Sequence record: MW822008.1
Reading direction: 5' to 3' (one strand)
DNA length: 64,000 nt
The notes under the pieces were generated by a model. It had not been told where the DNA came from. It was given only the letters and a program-made list of their open reading frames with translations, and did no database searches. Made by a program: the position numbers and the translations under genes. Shown here in pieces: positions 1-64,000 of this stretch; position 1 is the stretch's first letter; each line of letters begins with the position of its first letter.

Positions 1-1
1 T

Positions 2-319
2 ATCCAAGGTAATGTTGATATTACTCCAGCAATCAATGACGCAATTCATGCTGAAGCAAATGCACTAACGAAGTTTAGTGATTCTTCAGTACTGCATATT
101 GGTGTTCATGTGAAGAAAGAGCATAAGAATCAATATTTCGTAACTTTAACATCAGGCGGTAAGAGTGTTACAGCCGATGATGCAGATTTATACAAAGCAA
201 TTGGTGATTCATTTGAAAAAATGGAAACTGTCTTAGGTAAAGACAAAAGCATCAAATTGTATCGCCGTAACCACCCCGAACATCCAGTTCAAGAAGACTT
301 GACTGAAGACGAAGAGTAA
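2..319 (+). CDS. hpf: Ribosome hibernation promoting factor (HPF/RaiA, S30AE family), 5'-truncated by the window edge
   Basis: The frame is open from base 2, so the ORF-track start at 110 is internal. IQGNVDITPAINDAIHAEANALTKFSDSSVLHIGVHVKKEHKNQYFVTLTSGGKSVTADDADLYKAIGDSFEKMETVLGKDK follows the HPF pattern (I.G.nv.IT.A...; TL..gG..+.A..D+Y.AI....K+...L.K.K). Confidence 0.8.
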   Translation: MQGNVDITPAINDAIHAEANALTKFSDSSVLHIGVHVKKEHKNQYFVTLTSGGKSVTADDADLYKAIGDSFEKMETVLGKDKSIKLYRRNHPEHPVQEDLTEDEE

Positions 320-327
320 GATATAAT

Positions 328-357
328 AAAGGGACAGAGATTATTCTGTCCCTTTTC
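328..357 (+). terminator. Rho-independent terminator
   Basis: GGGACAGA-gattat-TCTGTCCC followed by TTTTCTT, just after the hpf stop. Confidence 0.85.
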
Positions 358-373
358 TTATGGAGTTTTAATT

Positions 374-790
374 ATGAATTATGTTTGGGCAGATGTAGTA
401 AAATCTCTCGTATCAACACATGATGTTGATTTACCAGATAGTCTGGTATTTAACAGATGGTACTATCCAAACCCAGAGGACTGTAACGTTGGAATTGGAT
501 TTTTTATTAATGATAAATCTAATTTGTTTGGATTAATTGAAGATGAGACAAAATCCAACCTTATATTCTCGATTGAGTTGAATGCTGATCACATAAAATA
601 CTACACCAATAAAATGGACGAAGACGATGGAGATGTTATAATCCCAGCAGAAATAGACGAAGCTTCATTTTTTCAGTTATCATTGATTTATGATCTATCT
701 AACATTACTTATGATAATGTGAAAGACCTTTTTATATTGTACAATAAAATGTATAATTACTTTTTAAGACCTTTTTATATTGTACAATAA
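374..790 (+). CDS. Hypothetical protein, paralogue family A (copy 1); C-terminus altered by a 43-bp duplication
   Basis: GGAG RBS and 138-aa ORF. The C-terminal motif (IP.....E..F.Q...I.D...) resembles ORFs 1002 and 1402. Confidence 0.75.
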   Translation: MNYVWADVVKSLVSTHDVDLPDSLVFNRWYYPNPEDCNVGIGFFINDKSNLFGLIEDETKSNLIFSIELNADHIKYYTNKMDEDDGDVIIPAEIDEASFFQLSLIYDLSNITYDNVKDLFILYNKMYNYFLRPFYIVQ

Positions 791-60685: not shown

Positions 60686-60732
60686 TTTTGGACTCCATAT
60701 AATTCGTTCATTCATTTGATTTATTTATGATA

Positions 60733-60760
60733 TAAAAAAGACGTTCCGAAGAACGCCTTA
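60733..60760 (-). terminator. Rho-independent terminator with UUCG loop
   Basis: On the minus strand: GGCGTTC-TTCG-GAACGTC followed by TTTTTT. Confidence 0.9.
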
Positions 60761-60765
60761 ATGTG

Positions 60766-63700
60766 TTATGAACCAATGTTAATGTTACTCTTAGCCAAGG
60801 AATTGACTATCTGTACGTTATCAACTGATGCAGTACTTAAGAAAATCTGGTCAGAACGTGAAGGGATTTCAAATAGTGATCCAAATTTAGAGTTAGGGTT
60901 TTGAGCTACGATAACAATAGTACTAATATGTCGTCCTAATTGGGAGTGAATGTATGTACACAAGTCTGTGTAATAGAAACTTTCACCAAAATCCCAGTTG
61001 TCAACATTAAAATACTCGTTAGTTAGTGCTACGACATTTTGACGAATTTCATCATCACTCATTGTACTGTTAGGCAATTTGACGACTTTAAAATCTGCTT
61101 TATAATCTTCAGCAGCACTCGCACCAAATAATGGTAGATATTCTGCACTATGCCAAATAATACTGTCACTGATGACTATTTTTTGTTCAACTTCTTTAAA
61201 AATGTCTTTCAATTCAACAGATGTTGGCGGTTTAGGCATATTACCTTGTGTTCCATTCTTCAACCATACATCAACTTCAGTTTTGTATGAATTGGTTAAT
61301 ACATACATGTCAATCAAGTTTGTTCTACTTGGGTCAATGCGATTATCATCTGGTGCATAATGTTTCCAGTGGAAATCAATACCAGTTCTTGCATTCGTTT
61401 TTACGGTATATTGTGAAGTTACATCTTTATAACCATAATAATCTAACTTTTGGTTAACATCAGCATTAGTACCGATATTAACAATAGCACGATAAAACGC
61501 AAGTTCAGGAGTTGCAGCAGTTGTATCATCAGAATAGGTCAAGTTCTCAATTAATTGGTTTAAACGGTCATTATTATTACCAACAGTTTGTTCAATGAAG
61601 TAATATTTACCATCATAGTTAAAGCCAACTATAAAGCCTGAACCTTTACTATAGATACCACTCAATGTTGTTGATCGAATAGCATTGTTGCGAACAAATT
61701 CACTTCTCTTATACGCATTAGTTTCTGCAAGTGCCTGATCCATTGTATAAGCCCATGAAGAATCAAGAATAGTGAAAGTATCATTCGGTAATGACAGTAC
61801 TGATATAGTGAAATCATCGTTTTCTTGGAAAACCAATATACCACCATATTTAACTGAATCTTCACCAGTCCAATTTGGTACAATTTCTCTGAATTGATTA
61901 GGTTCTAGTGGGATTCCATTACTATCAACGTTTTCAGAGGTGATAACCACACGAGAACCATCAAGATACCCGTTTTCTTGTTGAATTGTGTCATAAATTT
62001 GGAAATCTATGTTACTTGTCAACCCAGCATTACTATTGCTTGTGGTATTTGATGATAAAATTTCAATTTTGTCACTTTGAACACTACCAGTACTAATATC
62101 AGTTATCTTTTTAGAAGAAACGAAGTAAAAACGAACTTTATCACCACCAACGAACACATATTCAACGCCATTCGCATCAAATTCCCAGGTTTCAGCAGTA
62201 TATTTGATGTTAATCATAACAAGAACTTCATTTCCATTATAAGAAATAGTATCTTCATCAGTACTGATTTCTAATGGAATCCAAGAAGTTGTTTCTTTAT
62301 CATGAATAATAACAAAATCTGTCTTTTTATCAAGCATTGCAGCGATTGCTTGCACTTCGACACTATTAAAACGTGTTCTGTATTGTAAAATGTACTCTTG
62401 TGCTTGCATATTTGATGAAACTGAAGTACTTAGAACGTAATATCCATTATCAAGAACACTAACAATACTAGCCCACACAGTAGTTCCGGCATTTGAAAAC
62501 TTAATCAACGTACCAACTTGATAATTTCCGAATACGTTACCTGTTGCCCCCATAATACGACCATACGTATTAGTTGCGTAATTAGAATTGTATTCAGGTG
62601 TCCATTTTTGTTGAATTTCAATACCAATTGTATTCGGTGGATATGCTTGATAACGTTGGATTACAGCATTCTCACCAATCAATGGCTGAATATTATCAAT
62701 TACAATACTAGCATTTGTTTTGGTAGTTGGTAATTGTAAAGATTTATTAAATTGTGTGTTTTCTTGATACATTGAACCATCATCACTAAACACATCAGTG
62801 TTTTGATACTTACCAGTTGGATCATTAATATCAATGAATCGTGACTGTCCACTATATAAACGGTTAATTGCTTTAGATTTAAGAACTGTGTTACCCAAAC
62901 TCAACGGAGCAATGTTATAGTCTTCGCCGTTAACAAAACGGTTTTGAGTGTAATACATTTGTGGAGCACGAGCCTTAATTTGTTCAATTGTTTCTGCACT
63001 TTGTGCACGATCTGATTCATATTGCAATGTGAAACGAATATCCAAAGTACTGGATTCATAGCTTGATTGTGTTTTGGTTCTATAGGTGTATTTTACACTT
63101 TTGTTCTGGATTTCAGACGTTTTAATGTTGTATGTTTCACCATTACTAACACGATACCATACACGATACGTCCCACGAGGAACAACACCACTACGAGAAT
63201 CAGGATACTTAATAGTAATCTGGTCTTTATCACGAGTTGTGACAGCAAAGATTGTTTTTAGTTGACGGTTAACAGTATTGTATGCGATACTTTCCATAGA
63301 TGGAACTTTGGTCCATTTAGTACGTACAATACCATCTTCGTTGATTTCCTGAACCCAAACATCAGTTTCGTTGATATTATCTACGTTGATGTCTTGGATA
63401 CGGTTTTCTTCACGAATATTATATTGGTAATCTTGGTATGTCAATGTCCCTTGAACAAAATAAACGAAGAAACCAGTATTTGGTGAACTAAATCCGTTAC
63501 CATCATTCTGATAAACGATATATTTTTGCTCTTGTGGTTCAGGGTGACGCTCTTCAACACCAACTGCTGTAATATCAGGGTTGACAACTTCAAATGTCAT
63601 CGATTCACCATTAACTGTAGCTGTGAATGGAAGACTTGGTGCTGACATTGGAATTGTATTCATACGATATAGCTGACGAGAAACACCATTGATATCGATA

Positions 63701-64000
63701 CGTTTAACCGGATTACCAAACTGGTTAGTACTGACAAATGAACTGTTCATAACTAGAATGAAGTTCTCATACCAGTTTGTGTCCATTGGGTCATTCCAAC
63801 GAATGATTTTATCCTTAAGTGATTCGTTAAAACTATTACGAACGTCTTGGTTGGTTTTTATTTCTGTTAATTTAGCAACTGCACGACCTGGATATGAACG
63901 GCGTGGAGAGTAAGAAATCATTTTTGCGAGTTTCAGTACTGATGCACGACGAGTAGCAGTATCTAGGAAGTTCTCACGAGTGTTTAAATCCATACGGAAT
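60766..64000 (-). CDS. Baseplate wedge subunit (T4 gp6-like); start lies beyond the window
   Basis: ENFLDTATRRASVLKLAKMISY, ETIEQIKARAP..YYTQNRFVNGEDY motifs; frame open to the window end. Confidence 0.85.
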   Translation of the reverse strand, partial: FRMDLNTRENFLDTATRRASVLKLAKMISYSPRRSYPGRAVAKLTEIKTNQDVRNSFNESLKDKIIRWNDPMDTNWYENFILVMNSSFVSTNQFGNPVKRIDINGVSRQLYRMNTIPMSAPSLPFTATVNGESMTFEVVNPDITAVGVEERHPEPQEQKYIVYQNDGNGFSSPNTGFFVYFVQGTLTYQDYQYNIREENRIQDINVDNINETDVWVQEINEDGIVRTKWTKVPSMESIAYNTVNRQLKTIFAVTTRDKDQITIKYPDSRSGVVPRGTYRVWYRVSNGETYNIKTSEIQNKSVKYTYRTKTQSSYESSTLDIRFTLQYESDRAQSAETIEQIKARAPQMYYTQNRFVNGEDYNIAPLSLGNTVLKSKAINRLYSGQSRFIDINDPTGKYQNTDVFSDDGSMYQENTQFNKSLQLPTTKTNASIVIDNIQPLIGENAVIQRYQAYPPNTIGIEIQQKWTPEYNSNYATNTYGRIMGATGNVFGNYQVGTLIKFSNAGTTVWASIVSVLDNGYYVLSTSVSSNMQAQEYILQYRTRFNSVEVQAIAAMLDKKTDFVIIHDKETTSWIPLEISTDEDTISYNGNEVLVMINIKYTAETWEFDANGVEYVFVGGDKVRFYFVSSKKITDISTGSVQSDKIEILSSNTTSNSNAGLTSNIDFQIYDTIQQENGYLDGSRVVITSENVDSNGIPLEPNQFREIVPNWTGEDSVKYGGILVFQENDDFTISVLSLPNDTFTILDSSWAYTMDQALAETNAYKRSEFVRNNAIRSTTLSGIYSKGSGFIVGFNYDGKYYFIEQTVGNNNDRLNQLIENLTYSDDTTAATPELAFYRAIVNIGTNADVNQKLDYYGYKDVTSQYTVKTNARTGIDFHWKHYAPDDNRIDPSRTNLIDMYVLTNSYKTEVDVWLKNGTQGNMPKPPTSVELKDIFKEVEQKIVISDSIIWHSAEYLPLFGASAAEDYKADFKVVKLPNSTMSDDEIRQNVVALTNEYFNVDNWDFGESFYYTDLCTYIHSQLGRHISTIVIVAQNPNSKFGSLFEIPSRSDQIFLSTASVDNVQIVNSLAKSNINIGS

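Follow-up and report, generated by a model that had tools for sequence, protein, structure and literature searches.

The AGTACT palindrome of Escherichia phage BF17 and its RaK2-like relatives: a dispersed, HIP1-like word that is also built into early promoters

Results

The Window and Its AGTACT Sites

The stretch of DNA analyzed here (64,000 nucleotides; herein the window) corresponds to positions 124001 through 188000, plus strand, of Escherichia phage BF17 (MW822008.1; Asteriusvirus), an RaK2-like jumbo phage, and our subject is the palindrome AGTACT, which occurs there far more often than base composition predicts. In a megablast search with the 10-kb gene at 50714 through 60715 the 100% match was BF17 (a record of 383,493 bp); nine more coliphages matched at 99% identity or above, and a second group at ∼82%. 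The window is 96% coding and carries tail sheath, neck, tail-fibre, and large virion-protein genes. Two identical 20,590-bp copies of a terminal repeat are present in the BF17 record, which leaves a unique genome of 362,903 bp; we called ∼576 open reading frames (ORFs), and the full record has 663 annotated features. Long direct terminal repeats have been confirmed in this phage group by the fEgEco12 paper (PMC13070987). Ten restriction enzymes cut the DNA of fEgEco12 (∼99% identical here) in the predicted way (PMC13070987), which rules out global hypermodification of the DNA.

The zero-order expectation for the window, based on its G+C content of 37.4%, is 21.5 copies of AGTACT; 140 are found (6.5-fold; ∼2.2 per kb). 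A preliminary description of this DNA had counted 24, 20, and 17 copies by hand in the first three 10-kb bins, which is essentially right (computed values 25, 20, and 18), and its statement that the word stays frequent in the rest of the window agrees with the later 10-kb bins (25, 18, and 25) and the final 4 kb (9 copies). AGTACT ranks first among the 180 hexamers of the same composition (mean 23.7; runner-up 87), and it is the sole strongly over-represented 6-bp palindrome, the next being CAATTG at 2.3 times expectation; ACTAGT, which joins the same two codons in reversed order, has 20 copies. The possibility raised in the same description, that similar hexamers are equally enriched, thus falls away, there being no comparable one. 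The GTAC core, also said to be enriched, is at 1.86 times expectation in the window and at 2.24 times genome-wide, where it is the most over-represented tetramer. As described, the sites occupy all three codon phases in genes on both strands: 137 of the 140 are genic (85 in frame 0, 16 in frame 1, and 36 in frame 2), and the other three are noncoding or lie at a gene boundary.

The Excess Is Independent of Coding

A synonymous shuffle (herein the codon null), which holds protein sequences and per-gene codon usage fixed, yields 38.2 ± 5.3 sites in the window genes versus 137 observed (z ∼ 18), with expectations of 28, 3, and 7 for frames 0, 1, and 2; permutation of codons yields 35.0 ± 5.5. AGTACT is the top outlier of all 4096 hexamers under the codon null, followed by the overlapping words CAGTAC and GTACTG. 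Ser-Thr dipeptides are spelled AGT-ACT in 85 of 161 cases (27.7 expected), while the mirror spelling of Thr-Ser, ACT-AGT, is used 7 times against 20.7 expected, a three-fold depletion. We also applied a constrained shuffle, that is, a synonymous shuffle barred from creating GCGC or any palindrome absent from the sequence; it gives 38.4 ± 5.7 versus 137, so the surplus of AGTACT is no by-product of the avoidance of other words. The synonymous, codon-permutation, and constrained shuffles all leave a 3.6-fold excess, and the earlier argument that protein sequence alone is no explanation is borne out; the synonymous and codon-permutation shuffles rule out codon usage and dipeptide content as the cause.

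A dicodon-preserving null retains frame 0 by construction and is informative for frames 1 and 2 only, where it predicts 6.1 and 21.5 sites against 16 and 36 observed. The excess therefore does not vanish under such a shuffle, as the preliminary description had allowed that it might, and these two frames, together with the enrichment in noncoding DNA, rule out codon-pair (translational) bias. A maximal-order (fourth-order) Markov model predicts 121 copies of AGTACT in the window because the pentamers AGTAC and GTACT, each at 1.4 times its own Markov expectation, already carry the signal; the figure locates the signal without explaining it.

The pattern extends over the whole genome. AGTACT occurs 988 times in the 362.9 kb of unique sequence versus 123 at zero order (∼8-fold), and 831 times in the called ORFs versus 227 under the codon null (z = 40), where it is again the top outlier of the 4096 hexamers. 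Each 10-kb bin of the genome is enriched 3.5- to 12-fold and the terminal repeat ∼20-fold. Outside the repeat the densities in coding and noncoding DNA are 2.46 and 2.89 per kb, and the spacing of sites is near-exponential (mean 396 bp; coefficient of variation 1.14). The flanks are symmetric: 44% of sites are preceded by C and 48% are followed by G. Genome-wide there are 226 copies of the octamer CAGTACTG (∼59-fold at zero order), with 185 in genes versus 19.6 ± 4.1 under the codon null (9-fold); such a symmetric C..G extension is as expected for a dimeric reader. The sequence GAGTACTC occurs four times genome-wide. No single-mismatch neighbor of AGTACT is depleted (observed-to-expected ratios 0.73 through 1.40; AGTATT/AATACT 0.89), which rules out a sink of the kind that very-short-patch-like repair would draw on.

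The two 10-kb bins with the fewest AGTACT sites outside the polar blocks described below (13 and 12) make up BF17 positions 240001 through 260000. They include site-free gaps at 247874 through 250720 (2.8 kb) and 250720 through 252685 (2.0 kb); the gaps lie around the ribonucleotide reductase genes, from the end of that for the large subunit through that for the small subunit to small genes downstream. The genes in these gaps may be a later acquisition that does not yet bear the signature of the genome.

Other Palindromes Are Purged

The enrichment of AGTACT stands in a genome from which palindromes have largely been removed. Phages usually avoid 6-bp palindromes, as the preliminary description noted, and here the avoidance is strong: 26 of the 64 are absent from the window and 23 from the unique genome, where three more are present once. 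Under the codon null for the genome, CTGCAG is found 0 times versus 94 expected, CAGCTG 1 versus 75, GGTACC 0 versus 69, and ACCGGT 1 versus 50; CTGCTG is raised because CTGCAG is avoided. GCGC is missing altogether, both from the window (78 expected) and from all 362,903 bp, where 348 copies would be expected, and 209 under the codon null. What was sampled of the RaK2-like, CBB, Eneladusvirus, and Munch genomes likewise has none, and the word is at its expected level in the Vibrio relative, which suggests that a GCGC-specific nuclease of host or phage has been a long-standing selective agent. AGTACT alone stands out as an extreme exception where restriction avoidance has otherwise shaped the genome, and that a genome purged of 23 palindromes and of all GCGC should be saturated with it implies a strong and specific benefit.

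Some other words are also biased in BF17. The T4-type late promoter word TATAAATA is avoided in genes (1 versus 12 and 1 versus 24 in the two orientations under the codon null). In the coding regions TAAATA and TATTTA stand at ratios of 0.33 and 0.18, and the Shine-Dalgarno-like words GGAGGT and GAGGAG, as well as runs of A and of T, are depleted. Of the Escherichia coli Chi octamer GCTGGTGG, one strand carries 21 copies and the other 13, versus 1.3 expected on each; in the sense orientation there are 22 copies versus 9.0 under the codon null, a modest enrichment beyond codon usage.

Sites Are Conserved Above Local Controls and Turn Over

Conservation of the window sites was compared with that of control hexamers in the same frame, within 300 nucleotides and in the same gene. 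Of 129 genic sites, 71 are intact in EC22.5-2, which is 82% identical over the window (42.7 expected; z = 5.5), and 119 are intact in TH47 at 96% identity (111.9 expected). Where a frame-0 dipeptide is itself conserved, both codons are kept for 71% of AGT-ACT pairs (44 of 62), for 59% of other T-ending codon pairs, and for 18% of other spellings of Ser-Thr (6 of 33). Differences at nonconserved sites are spread about evenly over the six positions (21, 18, 13, 17, 24, and 17). At ∼73% identity, 18 to 42% of sites are shared versus ∼20% of all hexamers. These comparisons point to a moderate purifying signal that appears to act on the whole hexamer, together with substantial turnover.

The Excess Is Specific to a Clade of Enterobacterial Phages

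Relatives from IMG/VR were compared as 21-kb pieces around the capsid gene. AGTACT is the top palindrome in all of those whose capsid protein is 90 to 92% identical (3.2- to 6.5-fold), and four of these have z scores of 5.5 through 12.5 under the codon null; a relative with 72% capsid identity has a weak excess, and 26 environmental relatives at 64 to 69% have none (0.2- to 2.4-fold). Klebsiella phage W12-3 (Alcyoneusvirus, RaK2-like), Pectobacterium phage CBB (Mimasvirus), Erwinia phage pEa_SNUABM_12 (Eneladusvirus), and Salmonella phage Munch combine an AGTACT excess (5.7- to 6.8-fold; codon-null z 10 through 14) with zero GCGC. Over Asteriusvirus, Alcyoneusvirus, Mimasvirus, Eneladusvirus, and Munch, the codon-null z runs from 10 to 16; Vibrio phage 2.275.O has neither the excess nor the loss of GCGC. 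Counting genome-wide and in relatives, as had been proposed, thus finds the excess genome-wide and clade-wide; in the enterobacterial RaK2-like phages the trait is an old one.

One of the 26 distant relatives (locus L035; IMGVR_UViG_3300044959_000303, 50176 through 71393; capsid protein 65% identical) is rich in a different palindrome, TTCGAA, with 68 copies versus 7.1 expected. The codon null predicts 22.4 copies in its genes and 58 are found, distributed over all three frames; ATCGAT too is raised at this locus.

A 50-kb sample of E. coli K-12 holds 3 copies of AGTACT (0.06 per kb) and 342 of GCGC. The density of AGTACT differs ∼45-fold between BF17 and this sample, a contrast with which the self-mark proposed in the preliminary description is compatible.

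AGTACT Sites Flank the −35 Box of Early Promoters

The noncoding density of AGTACT rises to 10 per kb within the terminal repeat of BF17. The sites lie in strong sigma-70-type promoters, ten of which match the consensus at 12 of 12 positions in our scan. Counted from the first base of the −10 hexamer, AGTACT starts at −27 (15 cases) or at −7/−8 (19 cases). The far site thus touches the −35 box on its upstream side or runs into it, while only one or two bases separate the near site from the −10 hexamer. Among promoters of the form TTGNNN-16/17-YATAAT, 30 of the 35 in the repeat have the word at the −35 edge, at the spacer end, or in both places, versus only 6 of the 38 outside the repeat. The promoters of the window lack AGTACT, save for a look-alike at 10698.

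The same geometry is found in a second genus. The terminal repeat of CBB, whose small genes are largely different, contains 143 copies of AGTACT in 22.4 kb; 14 of its 17 promoters carry the word, 11 of them with both sites ∼20 to 22 bp apart, and the offsets are again −27 through −29 (16 cases) and −7 (16 cases). RpoD-like early promoters that have an UP-like element are described in the CBB paper, where AGTACT goes unmentioned (PMC5259590). The fixed positions of AGTACT around the −35 box in two genera lend partial support to one suggestion of the preliminary description, that the word is a binding site for a phage protein; Pfam scans of 16 proteins brought up no candidate that would bind it, and nothing we found favors the packaging role offered alongside.

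Two AGTACT-Free Blocks Have Opposite Polarity

Just inside the left terminal repeat, between BF17 positions 20455 and 36671 (locus L003), are two stretches without AGTACT, at 20455 through 25720 and at 28376 through 36671, separated by a 2.6-kb island with 17 copies. The longer block contains 47 copies of AGTACA, on the top strand only and in all three frames, with no TGTACT and essentially no GTACT; AGTAC has its usual density and is always followed by A. Under a local codon null AGTACA is found 44 times versus 13.5 ± 2.8 and GTACT 0 times versus 4.6. The shorter block has the opposite polarity (TGTACT 10 versus 2.4; AGTACA 1), although part of its TGTACT signal sits in a conserved peptide of tandem paralogous genes. 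The pattern is kept in TH47, where the longer block is 86.6% identical and one of its proteins only 55%, and in EC22.5-2. These features suggest that the symmetric site is excluded from the longer block.

The longer block of BF17 is 97.6% identical to the PBECO4/121Q group versus 82% elsewhere, and the usual near-identical relatives of BF17 match it at only 82 to 87%, a reversal of relationships that marks it as a recombination tract. Its genes are confined to Asteriusvirus, and in the other loci compared, AGTACT-free, AGTACA-rich blocks were found nowhere outside the homologous block. AGTACA and TGTACT show no polarity on the scale of the genome; elsewhere they stand at 1.3 to 1.4 times the null, with no large-scale switch. 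A search between the two blocks for a replication origin found no GC-skew switch and no iteron cluster, only tandem paralogous small genes. Next to the repeat, at 21000 through 27000, are tandem proteins of ∼70 residues with an LGTNYQE-like motif. Another tandem family, of ∼17 paralogous genes for proteins of ∼380 residues, occupies 338289 through 357513 on the minus strand; two are annotated as like regulator of chromosome condensation (RCC1).

Methyltransferases and Candidate Readers

No AGTACT or GTAC methyltransferase is evident in a motif scan of BF17 ORFs (ATG start, at least 80 residues), which detects one enzyme of the N6/N4 type and one of the C5 type only, with no N4-cytosine and no second N6-adenine methyltransferase. 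Pfam places the former (BF17 60839 through 61360) in the Dam family (PF05869) and the latter in PF00145. The C5 enzyme (BF17 285394 through 286254; positions 47394 through 48254 of locus L007), annotated as hypothetical, is short at 286 residues; among solved structures it comes closest to the animal DNMT3A/B catalytic domains. Such a DNMT3-like enzyme would fit the CpG methylation that bisulfite sequencing detected in RaK2 (PMC3622015). Altogether, 16 BF17 proteins were scanned against Pfam, ten of them mostly from near the phage sigma-factor genes. They comprise sigma factors, a DksA-like zinc finger, the two methyltransferases, and other enzymes.

Individual Sites and Genes of the Window

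The dispersed array spans the whole window (1 through 64000), and within it the 8-bp palindrome CAGTACTG has 36 copies between 87 and 63941 (0.8 expected at zero order). These start at 87, 1464, 7240, 9853, 12401, 13701, 15624, 17758, 18551, 20429, 23506, 24004, 24940, 27064, 30942, 31002, 33398, 34814, 36380, 40836, 47420, 48480, 49540, 50094, 51152, 52648, 53913, 54931, 55321, 55720, 57598, 57700, 59254, 61795, 62259, and 63934. One noncoding AGTACT (10698 through 10703, plus strand; context AAAAAAGTACTTG) lies upstream of the gene at 10811 through 11497 and resembles the layout of A-tract, AGTACT, and −35 box of the terminal-repeat early promoters. Another (5663 through 5668) is in the 261-bp spacer between the genes at 5232 through 5609 and 5871 through 6662, and a third (22038 through 22043) spans the stop codon of the gene at 20629 through 22038 and the following spacer.

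The densest gene above 400 bp (1960 through 3075, plus strand) has 7 sites, or 6.3 per kb; in CBB and Munch the homologous genes bear the annotation tRNA nucleotidyltransferase. The gene for a 3323-residue virion protein (50714 through 60685, minus strand) has 23 sites (2.3 per kb) and exemplifies the even spread over long structural genes, of which those at 27496 through 33216 and 33366 through 38282 have 14 and 13. The gene at 20629 through 22038 (plus strand) is annotated as an HNH endonuclease; its product matches DUF2201_N metallopeptidase-like and VWA-like domains and no HNH nuclease. Together with an AAA+ ATPase gene upstream (19225 through 20553), it looks like a MoxR/VWA pair.

Discussion

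The excess of AGTACT is real and acts on the DNA itself, and selection, or at the least some active maintenance, keeps it in place. The idea of a HIP1-like signature, with which the preliminary description began, has held: the excess is frame-independent and genome-wide, and the sites are conserved above their controls. The reading that we prefer, with a probability of roughly 45%, is that AGTACT and its extended form CAGTACTG are a selected HIP1-like word whose promoter and dispersed sites would both be read by a clade-specific, dimeric DNA-binding protein. Such a reader would be a protein of the RaK2-like phages that binds AGTACT as a symmetric dimer, with CAGTACTG as the preferred form. In the early promoters of the terminal repeats its use would be operator-like, one site abutting the upstream edge of the −35 box and the other abutting the −10 hexamer. 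Elsewhere, at about one site per 400 bp in coding or noncoding DNA, the number of sites would matter above their exact place; candidate roles are coating or organization of the genome, the marking of phage versus host DNA, and titration of a regulator during replication. We infer the existence of this protein, its identity as a phage product, and what its binding achieves from the statistical excess, the coding independence, the clade distribution, the partial conservation, and the promoter geometry in two genera described above.

Several observations weigh against this reading. Some 45% of sites differ at 82% identity, and strong biased repair might produce the same surplus of conserved sites. 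Flanks differ between promoters (A..T or G..T) and genes (C..G), and with such different preferences the promoter and intragenic sites could have different readers. A dimeric reader leaves the block with 47 one-strand copies of AGTACA and zero of AGTACT unaccounted for. Finally, Pfam scans of the 16 BF17 proteins reveal no obvious sequence-specific regulator.

In a bolder form the proposal becomes a genome-wide recognition system, in which a phage protein would read the ∼1000 sites, gate the early promoters, and mark, coat, or organize a chromosome that has no phage nucleus, with the strand-oriented variant AGTACA serving in one early block from which the symmetric site would be excluded. We regard this form as possible, though on present evidence rather unlikely. 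If true, viruses would have their first functional system of highly iterated palindromes, and HIP1 a tractable model.

Among the alternatives, an unlikely one is a neutral drive, in which biased mutation or mismatch repair, methylation-directed or other, converts near-sites into sites that have no function. The turnover of sites (55% conserved at 82% identity, 18 to 42% at ∼73%), their uniform density and random spacing, and the instability of other Ser-Thr spellings (6 of 33 kept versus 44 of 62 for AGT-ACT) would all follow; the phage has two orphan DNA methyltransferases, and the model has a precedent for HIP1 in Elhai 2015 (PMC4390886). Conservation above local controls speaks for selection instead, and in the study of Xu et al. 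a comparable finding served as the argument that HIP1 is under selection (PMC5861425). No single-mismatch neighbor is depleted, the deamination products AGTATT/AATACT standing at 0.89. Neither the Dam-family nor the CpG-type C5 enzyme appears to fit AGTACT, which contains no CpG; for these reasons, and in view of the AGTACA-only block, methylation-directed repair, one of the origins suggested in the preliminary description, is not supported. The longer block is hard to reconcile with any genome-wide neutral drive, which should erase a region that stays free of AGTACT and keeps AGTACA in two diverged lineages, and the drive has no place for the fixed promoter positions shared across genera.

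The same block speaks for a further model, in which the functional word is the oriented motif 5'-AGTACW-3' (perhaps CAGTACWG), read on one strand by a traveling machine such as a primase-helicase on the lagging-strand template, a nuclease-helicase, or a translocase. The palindrome would then serve both strands, as would suit forks or motors coming from either direction, and a single orientation would be kept where direction is fixed, as at 28376 through 36671 with AGTACA only and at 20455 through 25720 with the opposite polarity. The pattern persists in TH47 despite 86.6% identity over the longer block; near-exponential spacing and equal coding and noncoding densities fit a requirement for density over position. 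The polarity is nevertheless restricted to ∼14 kb of 363 kb, with no GC-skew switch or iteron cluster between the blocks, and part of the TGTACT/AGTACA signal comes from peptide motifs of tandem paralogous genes. The model does not explain why, in two genera, AGTACT keeps set positions about the −35 box, and the known primases of the T4 and T7 types recognize only three bases and would need no enrichment. We consider it unlikely.

A host protein as the reader is improbable. The ∼1000 sites would here titrate or activate a host factor during takeover, the nearest candidate being the nucleoid-occlusion factor SlmA, and no other host protein that reads CAGTACTG is known to us. The trait is seen only in phages of Enterobacterales and not in the Vibrio relative, the early promoters are read by host RNA polymerase, and the SlmA consensus GTGAGTACTCAC contains AGTACT as its core; DNA-bound SlmA antagonizes FtsZ assembly (PMC3020112). 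The half-site of SlmA, however, must begin with GT followed by a purine (PMC3020112), and at that third position the phage sites favor C. SlmA-type GTR/YAC flanks are found at 11 + 17 half-sites versus 30 + 26 expected (28 versus 56), and BF17 has neither a full GTRAGYRCTYAC site nor an SlmA homologue. SlmA itself was rejected as the reader on these grounds.

A compositional artefact (codon usage, Ser-Thr/Val-Leu/Tyr content, codon-pair bias, or a squeeze by palindrome avoidance) is barely credible: codon usage and protein sequence do lift the window expectation from 21.5 to 38, AGT, ACT, GTA, and TAC are frequent codons, and the fourth-order Markov model comes to 121, but the last figure is inherited from the two pentamers, the excess over the three shuffles extends to all three frames and to noncoding DNA, the mirror pair ACT-AGT is depleted, and relatives alike in G+C and gene content lack the excess. 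The probability left over from all of these readings belongs to explanations outside them.

The case matters beyond this genome. Cyanobacteria have been known for some thirty years to carry highly iterated palindromes, on whose function there is no agreement; a second, independent case, here in a virus, would make the question testable by standard methods of phage genetics and biochemistry. The carrier is an E. coli phage that can be cultured, and its close relative Sharanji grows on MG1655; the 363-kb genome holds about a thousand sites, and the word is clearly linked to early promoters. The literature searched makes no mention of an AGTACT bias in these phages. The case bears on the biology of jumbo phages without a phage nucleus, offers a simple signature for spotting the clade in metagenomes, and points to candidate regulatory elements of early promoters; for annotation pipelines, it illustrates that a strong oligonucleotide bias in a phage need not stem from codon usage.

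Several known systems resemble the AGTACT array in part. ScaI (AGTACT) and RsaI (GTAC) have the identical sequence as their target, but restriction targets are normally avoided by phages and this one is enriched; with no cognate methyltransferase in the ORF motif scan, AGTACT does not look like the target of a restriction-modification system. Chi, KOPS, and DNA uptake sequences are likewise genome-wide, present in hundreds to thousands of copies, act through their density, and tolerate turnover, and their strict strand polarity recurs in the AGTACA-only block; those words are asymmetric and polar everywhere, whereas AGTACT is palindromic over 96% of the genome. Phage promoters have operators and activator sites of their own, such as the MotA box of T4 and the sites of SPO1 TF1 at early promoters in the terminal redundancy. 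The promoter copies of AGTACT share with these a fixed distance to the −35 and −10 elements, a temporal class of promoter, and a long terminal repeat with host-takeover genes; they differ in that two copies flank the −35 box rather than replace it, and in that the word is also hyper-abundant in genes while MotA and TF1 sites are confined to promoters. The SlmA site GTGAGTACTCAC is a dispersed palindrome with an AGTACT core, and SlmA is a dimeric helix-turn-helix protein (PMC3020112). The phage sites, unlike those of SlmA, tend to avoid GT-purine flanks, number ∼1000 per genome versus ∼50 per host chromosome, and are found in promoters.

The closest known phenomenon is HIP1 of cyanobacteria, which with its alternate highly iterated palindromes is given by GCGATCGC (PMC5861425, PMC4390886). 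There are clear differences. The carrier is a virus rather than a cell, and the word is A+T-rich and 6 to 8 bp long, at 8-fold for the hexamer and ∼59-fold for the octamer at zero order versus 15- to 300-fold for HIP1; no cognate methyltransferase is evident. Unlike HIP1, AGTACT is built into promoters and coexists with a near-total purge of other palindromes. Four features of HIP1 are nevertheless found here, while a fifth, the concentration of one-base deviations at the outer positions, is not. The BF17 genome is too small to reveal periodic spacing at the 10 to 90 kb seen in cyanobacteria; over short distances its sites are near-exponentially spaced. Like HIP1, AGTACT is a short palindrome far above compositional expectation in all frames and in noncoding DNA; its sites are conserved above neutral expectation; and it is specific to a lineage, with an alternate palindrome, TTCGAA, in a relative.

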